From the NCBI GenBank assembly GCA_977017575.1, contig CDRNVI010000138.1, forward strand, positions 40,214 through 104,213: 64,000 nucleotides of DNA. Direction: 5' to 3'. The notes under the pieces are model-generated. The model searched no databases. It was not told where the DNA came from and saw only the letters and a program-made list of their open reading frames with translations. A program made the translations under genes and the position numbers. Shown here piece after piece: positions 29,601 to 63,357 of this stretch. How positions within the stretch are numbered: the stretch's first letter is position 1; each line of letters begins with the position of its first letter. Origin of the DNA: Paramoeba atlantica (taxonomy: Eukaryota; Protista; Discosea).

Positions 29601-32208
29601 TGTTTTGGAAATTGTAAAAGAAATTCTTTTATTTGGCGACTCTCTGACGAGGTTTCTTTTCTTTCTTTCTTTTTTTACAATCTTTTTTGAATTTCTAATT
29701 CTTTTCCTCTCATCCTATTTCTCTCACTCTCTCTCTTCTCCTTCTCTTTAAATCAAAAGTAATGTACTTTCCAAGCTCCCTTCATCAATCACAAACTCAA
29801 TCTCTTCCCACCTCACACAAAACAAACTTCTTCTCTCAAAACCTCTCTCTATCCTCTCTGTCCTCTCTCAAAATATTCCCCCCGCCTATAAAAATATTTC
29901 CCCCGCCCAAGAAAACTCTGCCGAAGTGTCACATTTATCCGAAGTTGATAACGAATTCGTTGAGGGGTTCCTTCCACTCTTTGATCGCGGAATAAAATCT
30001 ATTTTGGTTTGTACTCAGAGAGTGGTTAAATTGGCGGAGAAAATGAAATTTTTGGAAGGAAAGAGAGGAGAGGAAGAGAGAGAGGAAAGGTATGAGAAAG
30101 AGAGGAAGAAAGCTTTGGAGAGGAAAGAGAGAAGAGATGGAGGAGAGAGTAGTGAAGATGAAGAAGAGATGGAAGAGAGTGATGAAGAAAGAGAAGAAGA
30201 GAGAAAGAGAGAAAGGAGAGAGAAAAGAGAAAAGGAAAAACCAAAAGCGGGAGAAGAGGAAGGAGAAGAAGAAGAAGAAGAAGAAATTGGGATTGAAGAG
30301 ATGGGAGAAATTCAATTTGGTGCATTGTGTGACTACCACACAGAGATTGGATCAATTTTATTTGAGAGGTCACGAATTATTGAGAAATTGAGAGAATTGC
30401 ATTCTTTTGTATTGGAGTATATTGGGGCCAATTCTCCTCTTTCTTCTCCTTCCTCTCTTTCTTCTCTTTCTTCTCTTTCTTCTCTTTCTTCCCCATTTTC
30501 TCCAGGTTTTCTTGCAACATTATCATGGGCATCTCAAAGGTCTTTTCTATCTTTTCTTTCTTTCTCTCTCTCCTTCCTTTTTCTTTCTTTCTCTCTCTTT
30601 CTAATCTCTCTTTTCTAATTTCCAACAGATTACATGATCTCTTCCCTCTTATTCTTCATCTTTCAACATTCTCTCTCTCTGCATTCGGCGAATATGTCAC
30701 ATTTCATCACGTCACAAGTCGTTGCGCAGCGTCACTCATTCGATTATTTACAACATTGATGAGGAAGGGATTTTGTGCTGTGGAAGAGGAAGAGGAGGGA
30801 GAGGGGGAGAGAGGAGAAGAGGGAGAAGAAGGAGGGGTTGGATTGGCAGAAGGAGAGGGAGAGAAAGAGAGAGAGAAGGGAGAAGAGGATGAAGAGAAGT
30901 TGTTGGAGAAAGGGAAGGAGGAGGAAGAAGAGAGAGGGAAGAGAGAGATTGAGGAAGAAGAGGGGGGGGTGGAGATGGAGAATGATTTTGAGGGTGAGAT
31001 GTTTGATAAGAAGAGAGAAGAGAGAGAGGAGGGAGAGGAAGAGGGGGAGGAGAGAGAGGAAGAGGAGATGGAGAGAGAGATGGGGGAGGTGGATAGTGAA
31101 GAGGAAGAGATTGTTGATGAGAAGATGTGGGGAGATGAAGATAAAGAAGAGGATATTGAGAGAGAGGAAGAGAAGATGGAGAAGAGAGATGGAGAAGATG
31201 GAGGAGGGGAAGAGGAAGAGAAAGAGTTGATGGCGAAGGGAGAAGAAGAGGAGAAAGAGAAGGGGAAGAAGAAAGATGAGAAGAAAGGGAAAGAGAGAAA
31301 AGAAGAAGAAGAAAAGGGAAAAGAGAGAGGAGAAGAAGAAGAGGGAGAGGGGGAGGGGGAGGGAGAAGAAGAAGAGAAGAGAGAGGGAGAAGAGAAAGGT
31401 GAAGAAGAGAAAGAGAAAGGAGAAGGAGAAGAAGAAGAAGAAGAAGAGGGAGGAGTTCATGAAGAAAATTATCAAGAAGATCAACATTTAAACCCCAAAA
31501 AAGAAGATAAAGAATTTGAATTTCCTGATGAAATGGAAATTGGAGAAGAAGAAGAAGAAGAGAAAGAGAAAGAAGAAGAAGAAGGAGAGGGAGATGAAGG
31601 AGCTGAGGGAGAGAGAGAGGAAGAGGAAGAGAAGGGAGGGAGAGAGAGGGATATGAGAGAGGATTTGGGAAAAGAAGAGGGGGATGAAGAAAAAGAAAAG
31701 GGAGAAGAAGAGGGAAAAGAAGAGGGAGAAGAGGAGAAAAGAGAAGAAAAAGAAGATGAAGAGATGGGAGAGGGAGAAGGAGAAGAAGGAGAAAGAGAAG
31801 AGAAAGAAATCGGAGGAGAGAGCGACGAAGACGAAAAAATGGAAGAGAAAGAAGAAGAAGAAGAGAAAGAGAAAGAAGAAGAAGAAAGAAATACAGGTTT
31901 TTCTGAACAAAGAGGAGAAAATGCACAAGAAGAAGAACAAGAAGAAGAAAAAGAAGAAGAGGAAAATTCGGTGGAAATGTCAATGAAATCTCAATATGAT
32001 GATGTGGCTGAAGGTGTCGAGGATATGACTGCCAATAGCGCTGCGACACGTGGAGGAAATGAGGGAATGGAACAGGTTTTGTTTTTTTTATTTTTTATTT
32101 TTTAATTATTTTTTTAATTTTAATTTTTATTTTTTAAATTTTGTTTTATTGATATTTTGTTTACAATTTTTTTCCTTCCCAAACTACAGAAAAGAACAGA
32201 AGAGCAAG

Positions 32209-60905: not shown

Positions 60906-61352
60906 ACAATAAAACCAGCTCAATCAACAAAAAGAGAAAATTAAAGTTTTGACAATAAAAAAACAACAATTTTCTTGGAGATATTTTGAAACATCTCAGA
61001 AATATTTTCAAAAAATCTCAAAGATATGTCAAGAAAAGAAGAAAACTAAATATTTGGAGATATTCTGAGTTTCTTAGATATCTCAAGACAACTTCAACTT
61101 TATTGACCAATCAAAACAAAACACATTGGCATTTTGAGTGAAAAACTTGAATATTTGAAGATTTCTCAGAGCAGTTTCAAGATTTCTCAAAATTTTTAAG
61201 ATTTCTTTCCAATTGTTACAATTATTTGTCACACAATTGAGCCCAGAAAAGGGCCTTTCTAAGAAAGTTTGTGAATATTGAGTGCCCTCCAGAAAAAACA
61301 ACATTCAAGAGGTTTAAGAAATCAAGAAAGAATCAATTTCAGGTGTTTAAAG

Positions 61353-61578
61353 TTAACCCTTTGGCCCCTTATAATGCATATTTGCATCATAAAAATGCTT
61401 TTTCAAAAGTTGAGATCTCTCACTTAGAGTGAGAAAAAGAAAATTAAAAAAAAATCAACAAATAGAGAGAAGGAATCTTTTTTAGTCTTCTCCTCTTTTT
61501 TGAATAAAAACTATTTCAATTCAACCCAGCACCATGCAAATCAAAAAAAGATTTTTATGATGCAAATGTGCATTATAA
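61353..61578. mobile_element. Possible piggyBac-like terminus with an internal 28-bp inverted repeat
   Basis: TTAA followed by CCCTTT at 61353-61362. Arms 61369-61396 and 61551-61578 are reverse complements with one mismatch. I found no matching opposite end. Confidence 0.3.
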
Positions 61579-61611
61579 AAAATTTCTGTTTTGTGGATAT
61601 GTTCCCAAATA

Positions 61612-62035
61612 GGGTTGGTGCCCGTAGTTTAGTCGTAAATTCAACTATGTCCAACTCCAGGGGGGCGAGTTCAAATCCCAGTTTTTCAATATTATGGAAA
61701 ATTTTTCTGGTGCTGTAGAGTGATTTGATTGGAGTGAGGAGCTCTTGAAGAAGTGTGAAAATCGGAACAGGTTACATCTCAGCCCTGTCTGCTAAAAAGT
61801 TGAGGATAAATTCCCTTGGAAGGAGCTTTGGATTATTCTCCCTTCTGATGTGCATCCTCCAGCCTGAACTTGCAGAAGTTCTAAAGTTCAACATAAAGAC
61901 CGACTGAACTAAGCTGAAGTTTAAAACTTCACCTCTCATTAGAGGTTAAAAACAAACATAATTTAATGTAATTCAAATGGCTTAGATTAAGAACTACTAA
62001 TTGAATAAAGTCTGCCTCAAAAAGAAAAAAAAAAA
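61612..62035 (+). mobile_element. tRNA-headed SINE-like retroposon, ~424 bp
   Basis: Perfect 16-bp direct repeats GATATGTTCCCAAATA at 61596-61611 and 62036-62051. A-box-like TAGTTTAGTCG (61625) and B-box GTTCAAATCC (61669) lie at tRNA spacing. AATAAA precedes an A-rich tail. Confidence 0.75.
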
Positions 62036-62358
62036 GATATGTTCCCAAATAAATTCTAAAACAGGACAATTTTTTTTCTGTTTTTCTTTTTTTTTTTTTG
62101 GTTTTTTTTATCAAACCAATTTTACCTTTTTTTTAGTAAAAAGGGGTTTTAAACAGGTTGGTTTTGGGTGGTCAGAACCCAACAACTTTTTTGGATTTGA
62201 GGGTGTATCTTCATTCCTCACAATCACAAAATTCCTTGATAAGAGTTTCATTTTTCAAAAGCCCAGAAAAATTCATTCAGAATCAACTTCTCTGCCTCCA
62301 AAAAAAAAAAAAATAGAGGGTTCAAGATACAATTAACAAACAGAGAAATGGTGCAGAG

Positions 62359-63095
62359 TCAAAAACTATGCCTTGAATGAACTACTTTGTGAAATCCATA
62401 AGTTAGCAATGTGCTTTGATGAGATAGAATTCACCCATGTACCCTGAGAACTTAACAAGTGAGCTGATGCAATTGCAACTGCTGCAAGTTGGTCTAAAGA
62501 GGATGGAACATGTGCTGTGAATGACCATCATTGGGATCCAAGATCACAACATGTTGCAGAAACCAGTGAAGAGTGGATTATTTTGAATTCAACCCTGTGG
62601 AACTGGATCAATTCCCCCCTCACCCGTGACTGGACTTTCCCCATCCCCCCAGGGAATTTTGTAAGGAAATTCCAAGGAAACATGGTGACAACCCCCCATG
62701 TTTTGTTTCTGACCCAAACTGCTCTTGAGAATGCTCTAATTCTCCCTGTAATAATTACTAAAGATATCCAAGGATGGTTCCATCAGTTCCAAGAGAGCAA
62801 TCTGGTGAGGAGCTTTATTGAGGAAGATTTTCAAAGAAATGTAATTAACTTCATAGAAACCTCCAAACCAAATTCACTCCTTGGTTTTAGAAGGCAAACA
62901 ATCAAACACAAACCCCTTAGTGAGAACTAAAGTTGGTAAAGAAACTCCAATGCATCCCATGCTGAAGAGATCTTTGGATCTAACTCTTAATTTATCTTCC
63001 CTCCCCCCCCCCTTTCTTCCCCCCTCTTTTCCATCCTAGAGATGGTTTTTAACTCTAATAAATGGCACCTGGTGTCTGAACCTTAAAAAAAAAAA
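62359..63095 (+). mobile_element. 5'-truncated non-LTR retrotransposon (LINE): RNase H C-terminus, C-terminal extension, 3' UTR, poly(A)
   Basis: 17-bp TSD AGAGAAATGGTGCAGAG at 62342-62358 and 63095-63111. Frame FDEIEFTHVP*ELNK*ADAIATAA continues into ORF 62517-62930. AATAAA at 63057, A-run 63085-63095. Confidence 0.85.
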
Positions 63096-63357
63096 GAGAA
63101 ATGGTGCAGAGATGAAACTGAGAAATAAACTCAGAAATCAAATCAGGGAAAAACAAGAGTGAGAGCTTTATTTTGACTTTGGTACTTAGCACTAACTATT
63201 CACAGAATGCAGAGGGCAAAGGACTAAGTCACCAAGTTCACCAAAAGGAAAAATGGAGGTTTGGGAACTGGATCAGCAATTCATTGAAGGGGAGAAATGG
63301 ATCAAAAGAGTGACATCATCATTGGAACAAAAAGACCACAAGCAAGCCTTAGGCTAT

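Follow-up and report, generated by a model that had tools for sequence, protein, structure and literature searches.

What is the poly-A-tailed insert at positions 61612-62035 of this stretch of Paramoeba atlantica DNA (assembly GCA_977017575.1, contig CDRNVI010000138.1), and how was it made and moved? The whole stretch, 64,000 nucleotides long, is called the window below. Animals, plants and some fungi are familiar sources of SINEs (short interspersed elements), which are seldom described in protists. An initial annotation of the window had proposed that the insert represents a new SINE family whose head derives from a tRNA. Here we find that it belongs, almost certainly, to a real and mobile family of SINE-type retroposons, which we call family A or SINE A, and we consider in turn its copies, its head, its transcription and the elements that may have copied it.

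A young, high-copy family of short retroposons

The insert lies between two copies of a perfect 16/16 direct repeat, GATATGTTCCCAAATA, at 61596-61611 and 62036-62051, the sole perfect 16-mer direct repeat in 61000-62600. The annotation had described a perfect 16-bp target-site duplication, a non-coding insert of 424 bp, an AATAAA, an A tail and runs of five T at 61682 and 61702, and all of these are found in the sequence. The element is short (below about 600 bp) and non-coding, as the definition of a SINE requires. In the family A consensus the longest stop-free stretch is 57 codons, and the region that holds it is partly deleted in a sister family, family B, described below.

Searching the assembly with SINE A gave 162 candidates, at least 41 of them near-full-length copies at 94-98% identity, and all of the matches listed are on contigs C137-C236. 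This family rules out a single-copy insert, a case that the annotation had named against its own proposal. Thirty non-redundant copies with their flanks (loci L001-L030) were taken for analysis, and duplications were scored in the 28 with enough flank. Every one of the 28 has its own target-site duplication, differing from the others and 13-22 bp long (median 16). The 5' start is equally regular, being GGTTGG preceded by one base in 29 of the 30 copies; that base is G in 24 and T in five, and a few copies carry an additional 1-4 bases where the 5' end joins the flank. The proposal of a multi-copy family with a separate duplication for each copy and a constant start is therefore borne out. At the 28 target sites the base at -1 is T or G, the base at +1 is a purine in 24 and the base at +2 is A in 20, a loose T/RA target that resembles nicking by an L1-type endonuclease. 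The separate duplication of about 16 bp for each copy, the A tail, the constant 5' end and the loose target show that SINE A spread by target-primed reverse transcription.

One sequence could also come to lie at many loci without being mobile, through segmental duplication or an error of assembly, and some loci are indeed true duplicates with identical flanks (L005/L009/L010 and L011/L012). Twenty-eight differing flanks that carry 28 differing duplications are not what this predicts, and the same boundaries recur in four independent public read sets, so that we give it practically no credence. In those read sets the contigs break exactly at 61611/61612 into differing flanks; one contig spans the 5' junction of the SINE without difference. 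Contig depth, summed over the SINE, exceeds that of unique flanks by a factor of 10^3-10^4, which is not a copy number. No empty-site allele for the window insertion was seen in the contigs of the independent read sets.

Family A is young and high-copy. Its 30 copies average 98.1% identity to the consensus, and divergence at non-CpG sites is 1.1%. Substitutions per site reach 0.16 at consensus CpGs vs 0.011 elsewhere, a 15-fold excess indicative of CpG-targeted mutation in repeats, with cytosine methylation in this host as the probable route. The annotation had counted five CpGs in the window copy, three of them surviving in the head. The count is correct, but selective survival in the head is not seen: the consensus has 9-10 CpGs, seven of which fall within the first 77 nt, and the window copy has lost four of these seven and one of the three in the body. 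Because the consensus CpGs are concentrated in this way, the three in the head reflect original placement and not protection. Among non-CpG variants, those at positions 85 and 413 co-vary, the latter being a G in the tail that is present in 14 of the 30 copies. A tail base common to so many copies and tied to a position in the body indicates that the start of the tail is templated, and the co-variation itself points to at least two source lineages of SINE A.

Some copies lie in or beside other genes and elements. One (L009:1501-1924) interrupts a cytosolic HSP70 paralogue (L009:59-1513) in the region that encodes its C terminus, with the duplication AAGGATGAAGATGAGGA. This insertion is present on three contigs (L005, L009 and L010), two of which carry an extra 67-nt copy of the SINE 3' end after it. 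Another copy (1501-1922) is inside a long terminal repeat (LTR)-type retrotransposon on the minus strand (L029:552-3140), between gag, with two CCHC knuckles, and reverse transcriptase. The open reading frame (ORF) in L029 that bears this reverse transcriptase was considered as a long interspersed element (LINE) and rejected, since its gag zinc knuckles and YFTEIDL-type reverse transcriptase are of the LTR type. Copia-type and Ty3-type pol fragments flank further copies (L017, L019, L020 and L021).

Promoter-like boxes in the head

The head of the window copy contains an A-box-like and a B-box-like motif 43 nt apart, measured start to start, a distance that is 43-44 nt in host tRNA genes. The boxes and their tRNA-like spacing thus stand as annotated, with the value of 44 nt given there corrected by one. 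We scanned 502 kb of host DNA on both strands for an A box with up to two mismatches and a B box with up to one, 30-60 nt apart. There were 87 matches and, besides SINE-A heads and tRNA genes, only three were left, namely the head of family B (L007) and one site, probably a chance occurrence, found in both of the duplicates L011 and L012. One match turned up in 132 kb of shuffled DNA. The pair of boxes in the SINE A head is more than chance.

Conservation among the copies follows the same motifs. The A-box core TAGTTTAGT is kept in all 30 copies, and its AGTCG variant also occurs in host tRNAs, and at the B box GTTCAAATCC is kept in 27 of 30. The first base of the element, usually G, is 13 nt upstream of the A box, which fits the start expected of a type-2 promoter. 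At the level of motifs only, then, SINE A has the layout of an internal type-2 promoter for RNA polymerase III (Pol III).

A sister family and the origin of the head

Family B, represented by L007:612-935 on the plus strand, is 324 bp long with a poly-A tail. The assembly contains 89 candidates, 88-92% identical, in the same contig partition as family A. The heads of the two families are collinear (p about 0.008), with GTTCAAATCCCA identical at 12 of 12 positions, and conservation between them is highest at the A and B boxes. A central core is also common to both: in an nhmmer comparison, positions 135-217 of the hidden Markov model match L007:726-803 with E=5e-7, and the match has z=13 vs shuffles. 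This block of about 90 nt is about 80% identical (78-80% over 67 nt). The 3' region, including the AATAAA, is alike as well (p about 0.008). Family B is an older and shorter sister of family A built on the same plan of head, core and tail, and the collinearity of all three parts indicates that both come from one ancestral SINE. Two pattern scans for the core in JGI metagenome contigs found no match. Many copies of family B are clustered on C144, C182 and C184 beside the same LINE remnant, and these clusters give the impression that a single nested insertion underwent duplication.

The sister family also bears on where the head of family A came from, a question on which several results weigh against a tRNA. 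ARAGORN found no tRNA in the window, nor in the head of the consensus when its thresholds were relaxed, giving only a meaningless call at the 60% threshold. Rfam, searched with E up to 10, gave no tRNA match for a 101-nt slice with a consensus-like head, and over 901 nt and slices of 101 and 131 nt it gave no tRNA, 5S, 7SL or small nuclear RNA, only matches at chance level. The family B head likewise received no tRNA call from ARAGORN or Rfam. The predicted fold of the SINE A head is a long hairpin, in which GGGUUGG pairs with CCAACCC, and not a cloverleaf. The set of host tRNAs available for direct comparison consisted of 17 isoacceptor species; tRNA-Val, to whose start the annotation had likened the head, is not among them. 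Against this set the head of family A aligns collinearly, best with tRNA-Asp(GTC), with TGTC aligned to the anticodon, but at a p of about 0.013 the similarity is marginal.

The head of family B gives a clearer result. Its score against host tRNAs is 46.5, where the maximum in 300 shuffles is 37 (p<0.003), and the match is collinear from the D arm to the T arm. The best partner is tRNA-Thr, and the similarity is generic. Since the head of family B matches host tRNAs and the heads of A and B are homologous, a tRNA origin extends to family A; we conclude from these alignments that both heads would descend from one tRNA-derived head, from which A has drifted further. The annotation's tRNA-derived head is therefore supported in its promoter layout and, by way of the sister family, in its origin; recognition by ARAGORN or Rfam does not follow, and direct similarity is marginal. 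On this evidence the SINE A head is quite probably tRNA-derived.

Transcription and the internal T runs

If the head is a promoter, the transcript would have to pass two runs of T5. The first is five T or longer in 28 of the 30 copies; the second is present in 27, and family B has T4 there. Runs kept in 27-28 of 30 copies were evidently carried by the source genes. The minimal Pol III terminator varies, from about T4 in vertebrates to T6-7 in budding yeast. In this host, about 44 tRNA genes with distinct flanks, from the same contig partition, have a T run that starts 0-4 nt past the tRNA. These runs are mostly T7-T19, commonest T8-T11, with T5 and T6 found once each. Because the terminators of host tRNAs are so much longer, T5 in SINE A may be leaky, and the internal runs are probably a weak stop in this host. 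Further C/T-rich tracts often follow the T runs of host tRNA genes (L031-L045, L048-L060), and tRNA-Lys(CTT) occurs in at least 13 dispersed identical copies among the tRNA loci on C137 and higher.

Three points speak against transcription by Pol III. In many eukaryotes the polymerase would halt at a pair of T5 runs located so early, inside the first 95 nt. Both SINE families and the LINE described below have kept the AATAAA ahead of the tail, at 9 nt in the window copy, and this also fits cleavage and polyadenylation of the RNA polymerase II (Pol II) type. None of the runs listed, all of them sets of contigs, is recorded as RNA, and one that we presume to be RNA, its nature being a guess, shows SINE copies only within longer contigs.

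These points are what an alternative would predict in which SINE A keeps its tRNA head only as a relic and is a retroposon now made by Pol II from a few master copies or by read-through, cleaved and polyadenylated at the AATAAA and copied by LINEs in the manner of a processed pseudogene, its boxes being leftovers. The position and conservation of the AATAAA, the two T5 runs directly after the head, the loss of the cloverleaf and the embedding of the SINE in a longer contig of the presumed RNA run would all follow. The AATAAA is a property of the whole family: at this signal AATAAAGTCTG is kept in 28 of the 30 copies of SINE A, and an AATAAA precedes the tail in family B and the LINE too. Some mammalian Pol III SINE transcripts are reportedly polyadenylated in an AAUAAA-dependent manner, in which case the signal is no argument for Pol II. 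The host's own Pol III terminators, far longer than T5, take weight from the T runs. A constant 5' end exactly 13 nt before the A box is the expectation for a type-2 internal promoter, and the B box shows no difference between two families whose likeness is only about 75%. The very high copy number and the existence of two or more source lineages are also easier to explain if daughter copies carry their own promoter. We consider the Pol II alternative rather unlikely and incline cautiously, from the motifs and their conservation, to transcription of SINE A by Pol III.

A candidate partner LINE

A 5'-truncated LINE lies 300 bp downstream of the SINE, at 62359-63095, between the two copies of a separate 17-bp duplication, (A)GAGAAATGGTGCAGAG, located at 62342-62358 and 63095-63111. 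Contigs from other runs extend upstream of 62359 with one common sequence. The end of the RNase H domain in this fragment is read with TGA stops. The domain of about 150 amino acids that follows (62463-62927, plus strand) is without a match in Pfam. A search of 1.8 billion representative proteins gave only 18 relatives, all of them short fragments; the longer of these carry RVT_3/RNase_H. The exhaustive protein search with this C-terminal piece gave no full-length ORF2, and two contigs taken from its matches had only truncated copies. About 50 copies of the LINE are present in the assembly, the longest open frame among them being 1,440 amino acids. This frame, on C142, has an APE-type endonuclease match (PF03372) at one end and, at the other, the C-terminal domain together with RNase H, the latter as seen in relatives; its reverse transcriptase part was not among the best 150 RVT_1 matches. 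A second LINE family, 46-48% identical, has a frame of 1,489 amino acids on C180 with the same layout.

Could SINE A be a piece of such a LINE? The element would then derive from a LINE, either by internal deletion or as pieces of LINE untranslated regions (UTRs), like the Entamoeba SINEs or those of the trypanosome RIME/ingi type, and its boxes would be coincidental. The SINE does adjoin LINE remnants and has the same type of tail and length of duplication, and the only short retroelements listed for Amoebozoa in a review are SINE-like elements paired with LINEs, their heads of unknown origin. The sequences do not bear it out. The best local score of the SINE against the 739-nt 3' part of the LINE is 23, with a mean of 18 and a maximum of 31 in shuffles, and is not significant. 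The SINE nhmmer profile matched no LINE DNA in the host DNA scanned, which took in the 5' part of a LINE in L007 together with its endonuclease domain. Neither 5' ends that match the 3' region of the neighbouring LINE, a further case that the annotation had set against itself, nor a tail that matches it was found. The A and B boxes as a pair are far too specific for chance, and the head of family B matches tRNAs. A LINE origin is accordingly very unlikely.

The same absence of similarity is a weakness of the pairing itself, in that no common 3' sequence ties the SINE to a particular LINE, and we infer the pairing from co-occurrence, tail type and duplication length. With no sequence in common, it would be of the relaxed, poly-A type and not the stringent one. 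SINE A was likely moved by poly-A LINEs of this genome that are APE-type and carry RNase H.

Proposed mode of propagation

Taken as a whole, we favour with modest assurance a tRNA-headed SINE A, made by Pol III and copied in trans by poly-A LINEs. The first 70 nt would be the strongly diverged descendant of a tRNA gene that kept its A box, B box and their spacing and lost its anticodon and acceptor stems. Pol III would initiate on the first G, which precedes the A box by 13 nt, and read through both weak T5 signals. The resulting RNA would carry the encoded A-rich tail, possibly extended via the AAUAAA signal, and APE-type, RNase H-bearing LINEs would copy it in trans through that poly-A tail. 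As with Alu and L1, no common 3' sequence would be needed.

Comparison with known SINEs

On this scheme the element would behave as do the tRNA-derived, poly-A-tailed SINEs that L1-type LINEs move in plants and mammals. The copies are a few hundred bp long and have an A and a B box near the 5' end, as do plant SINEs (Brassica S1, and maize ZmSINE2/3 with LINE1-1_ZM) and rodent B2 and ID. They are also like these in the A tail with an AATAAA nearby, duplications of about 15 bp, loosely T/A-rich targets and an APE-type partner LINE, here a candidate. This likeness is one of plan and description. RVT_3-type RNase H is seen in plant L1 elements, and the candidate LINE, with an RNase H of that type, recalls them. 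Maize SINEs, according to the review, have tRNA heads and L1 partners. Unlike the plant and rodent elements, SINE A has a head too diverged for tRNA finders, two T5 runs in the transcribed part and a protist host. With Alu and L1 it agrees in that SINE and candidate LINE have only the poly-A tail, duplication length and target type in common and not the 3' sequence; unlike Alu, its head is of the tRNA and not the 7SL type, and mobilisation by a LINE is something that we infer.

The core common to families A and B invites comparison with SINE superfamilies that have a conserved central domain, of which two papers describe CORE, V, Deu, Ceph, Meta and the bivalve HCD-SINEs (PMC11481361, PMC4758252). 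Like them, A and B differ in size and have diverged heads around a common block. Unlike them, A and B are just two families of one genome, linked perhaps by ordinary common descent. The Entamoeba SINE-like elements of the review (EhLSINE1/2 and EdSINE1) have heads of unknown origin and are paired with R4/RLE-type LINEs. SINE A is like these in being a short, non-coding and probably LINE-dependent retroposon, possibly of the same supergroup, and unlike them in its tRNA-type head and in a candidate LINE that is APE-type with a poly-A tail. A literature search found no tRNA-type SINE described in Amoebozoa. Family A is thus a new SINE family of a well-known kind, its newness judged solely by that search.

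Features of the window and the assembly

Coordinates of the SINE and the LINE are collected in Table 1. Directly upstream of the SINE is a 35-nt inverted repeat, at 61369-61403 and 61544-61578, its arms 91% complementary and 140 nt apart. It was considered as a miniature inverted-repeat transposable element, with MITE-like ends, and rejected as it is single-copy in the assembly; it also gave a weak microRNA-like match in Rfam. Between the SINE and the LINE, a short stretch of high depth at 62274-62340 ends in TCTGCCTCC and then A14, resembling the terminal GTCTGCCTC and A tail of the SINE. At 62300 and 62334 contigs from other runs come to a break. A related retroposon, truncated down to its extreme 3' end, may have left this stretch. 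Elsewhere in the window, 30001-32000 is strongly skewed (GC skew 0.64, AT skew 0.41), with overlapping long low-complexity ORFs on both strands, and genes are interrupted, apparently by short introns, as in the midasin and ankyrin-repeat exons.

Table 1. Positions of the SINE A copy, its parts and the neighbouring LINE sequences in the window
Feature	Position	Strand	Remarks
Left target-site duplication, GATATGTTCCCAAATA	61596..61611	.	16/16 match to 62036-62051
Full-length copy of SINE family A, 424 bp	61612..62035	+	98.1% identity to 30-copy consensus
tRNA-like head: 6-nt leader, D-arm-like and T-arm-like parts, without acceptor 3' strand	61612..61681	+	
A-box-like motif, TAGTTTAGTCG	61625..61635	+	2 mismatches to TRGCNNAGTGG; 13 nt from the element's first base
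B-box-like motif, AGTTCAAATCC	61668..61678	+	1 mismatch to GGTTCRANNCC
Internal T5 run 1, right after the T-arm-like part	61682..61686	+	
Internal T5 run 2	61702..61706	+	
Central core common to SINE families A and B (element positions ~130-217)	61741..61828	+	nhmmer match to family B
AATAAA, 9 nt upstream of the A tail	62004..62009	+	
A tail, AAAAAG then A11	62019..62035	+	
Right target-site duplication	62036..62051	.	16/16 match to left repeat
5'-truncated LINE: end of RNase H domain, lineage-specific C-terminal domain, 3' UTR, AATAAA, A tail	62359..63095	+	
Second copy of the same LINE: 3' end and A tail, cut by the contig end	63959..64000	-	97.6% identity to LINE positions 699-739

The same contig is present in the ENA metagenome assembly ERZ24900291, as contig ctg3958l. 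Among the matches listed, SINE A, SINE B and the poly-A LINE are only on contigs C137 and higher, and LINE-type reverse transcriptase matches, among the best 150 for RVT_1, are mostly on C1-C111. A tRNA cluster on C53 (L047) has nine tRNAs in 1 kb with T4-5 runs or none, and its tRNA-Lys(CTT) differs from that of the set on C137 and higher. The assembly appears to mix at least two eukaryotes. Protein markers did not place the host: a midasin exon has its best non-self match at 45% identity, and HSP70, 79-80% identical to fish sequences and 76% to one from a plant, falls in a tree within a strongly supported clade of metagenomic sequences that has a long stem and is not separated clearly from animals. 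An ORF at L036:1-1332 on the plus strand has an actin-fragmin-kinase catalytic domain (PF09192), for which a word-indexed protein search found its own copy only.

Significance

SINE A leaves the accepted view of how SINEs work unchanged. Its young, high-copy family with clean duplications is usable as a marker system, and the 15-fold CpG excess among its copies is a direct readout of CpG-targeted mutation. Internal T5 runs set beside tRNA terminators of T7-T19 suggest a peculiarity of Pol III termination in this lineage. It is possible, and we put it forward only tentatively, that the host is a marine amoebozoan and that families A and B are the first tRNA-type Pol III SINEs of the supergroup, a small superfamily with its own core in which T5 is tolerated as termination needs at least T7. 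If the host is an amoebozoan, a tRNA-type SINE and a poly-A LINE would be added, as a pair, to that supergroup.

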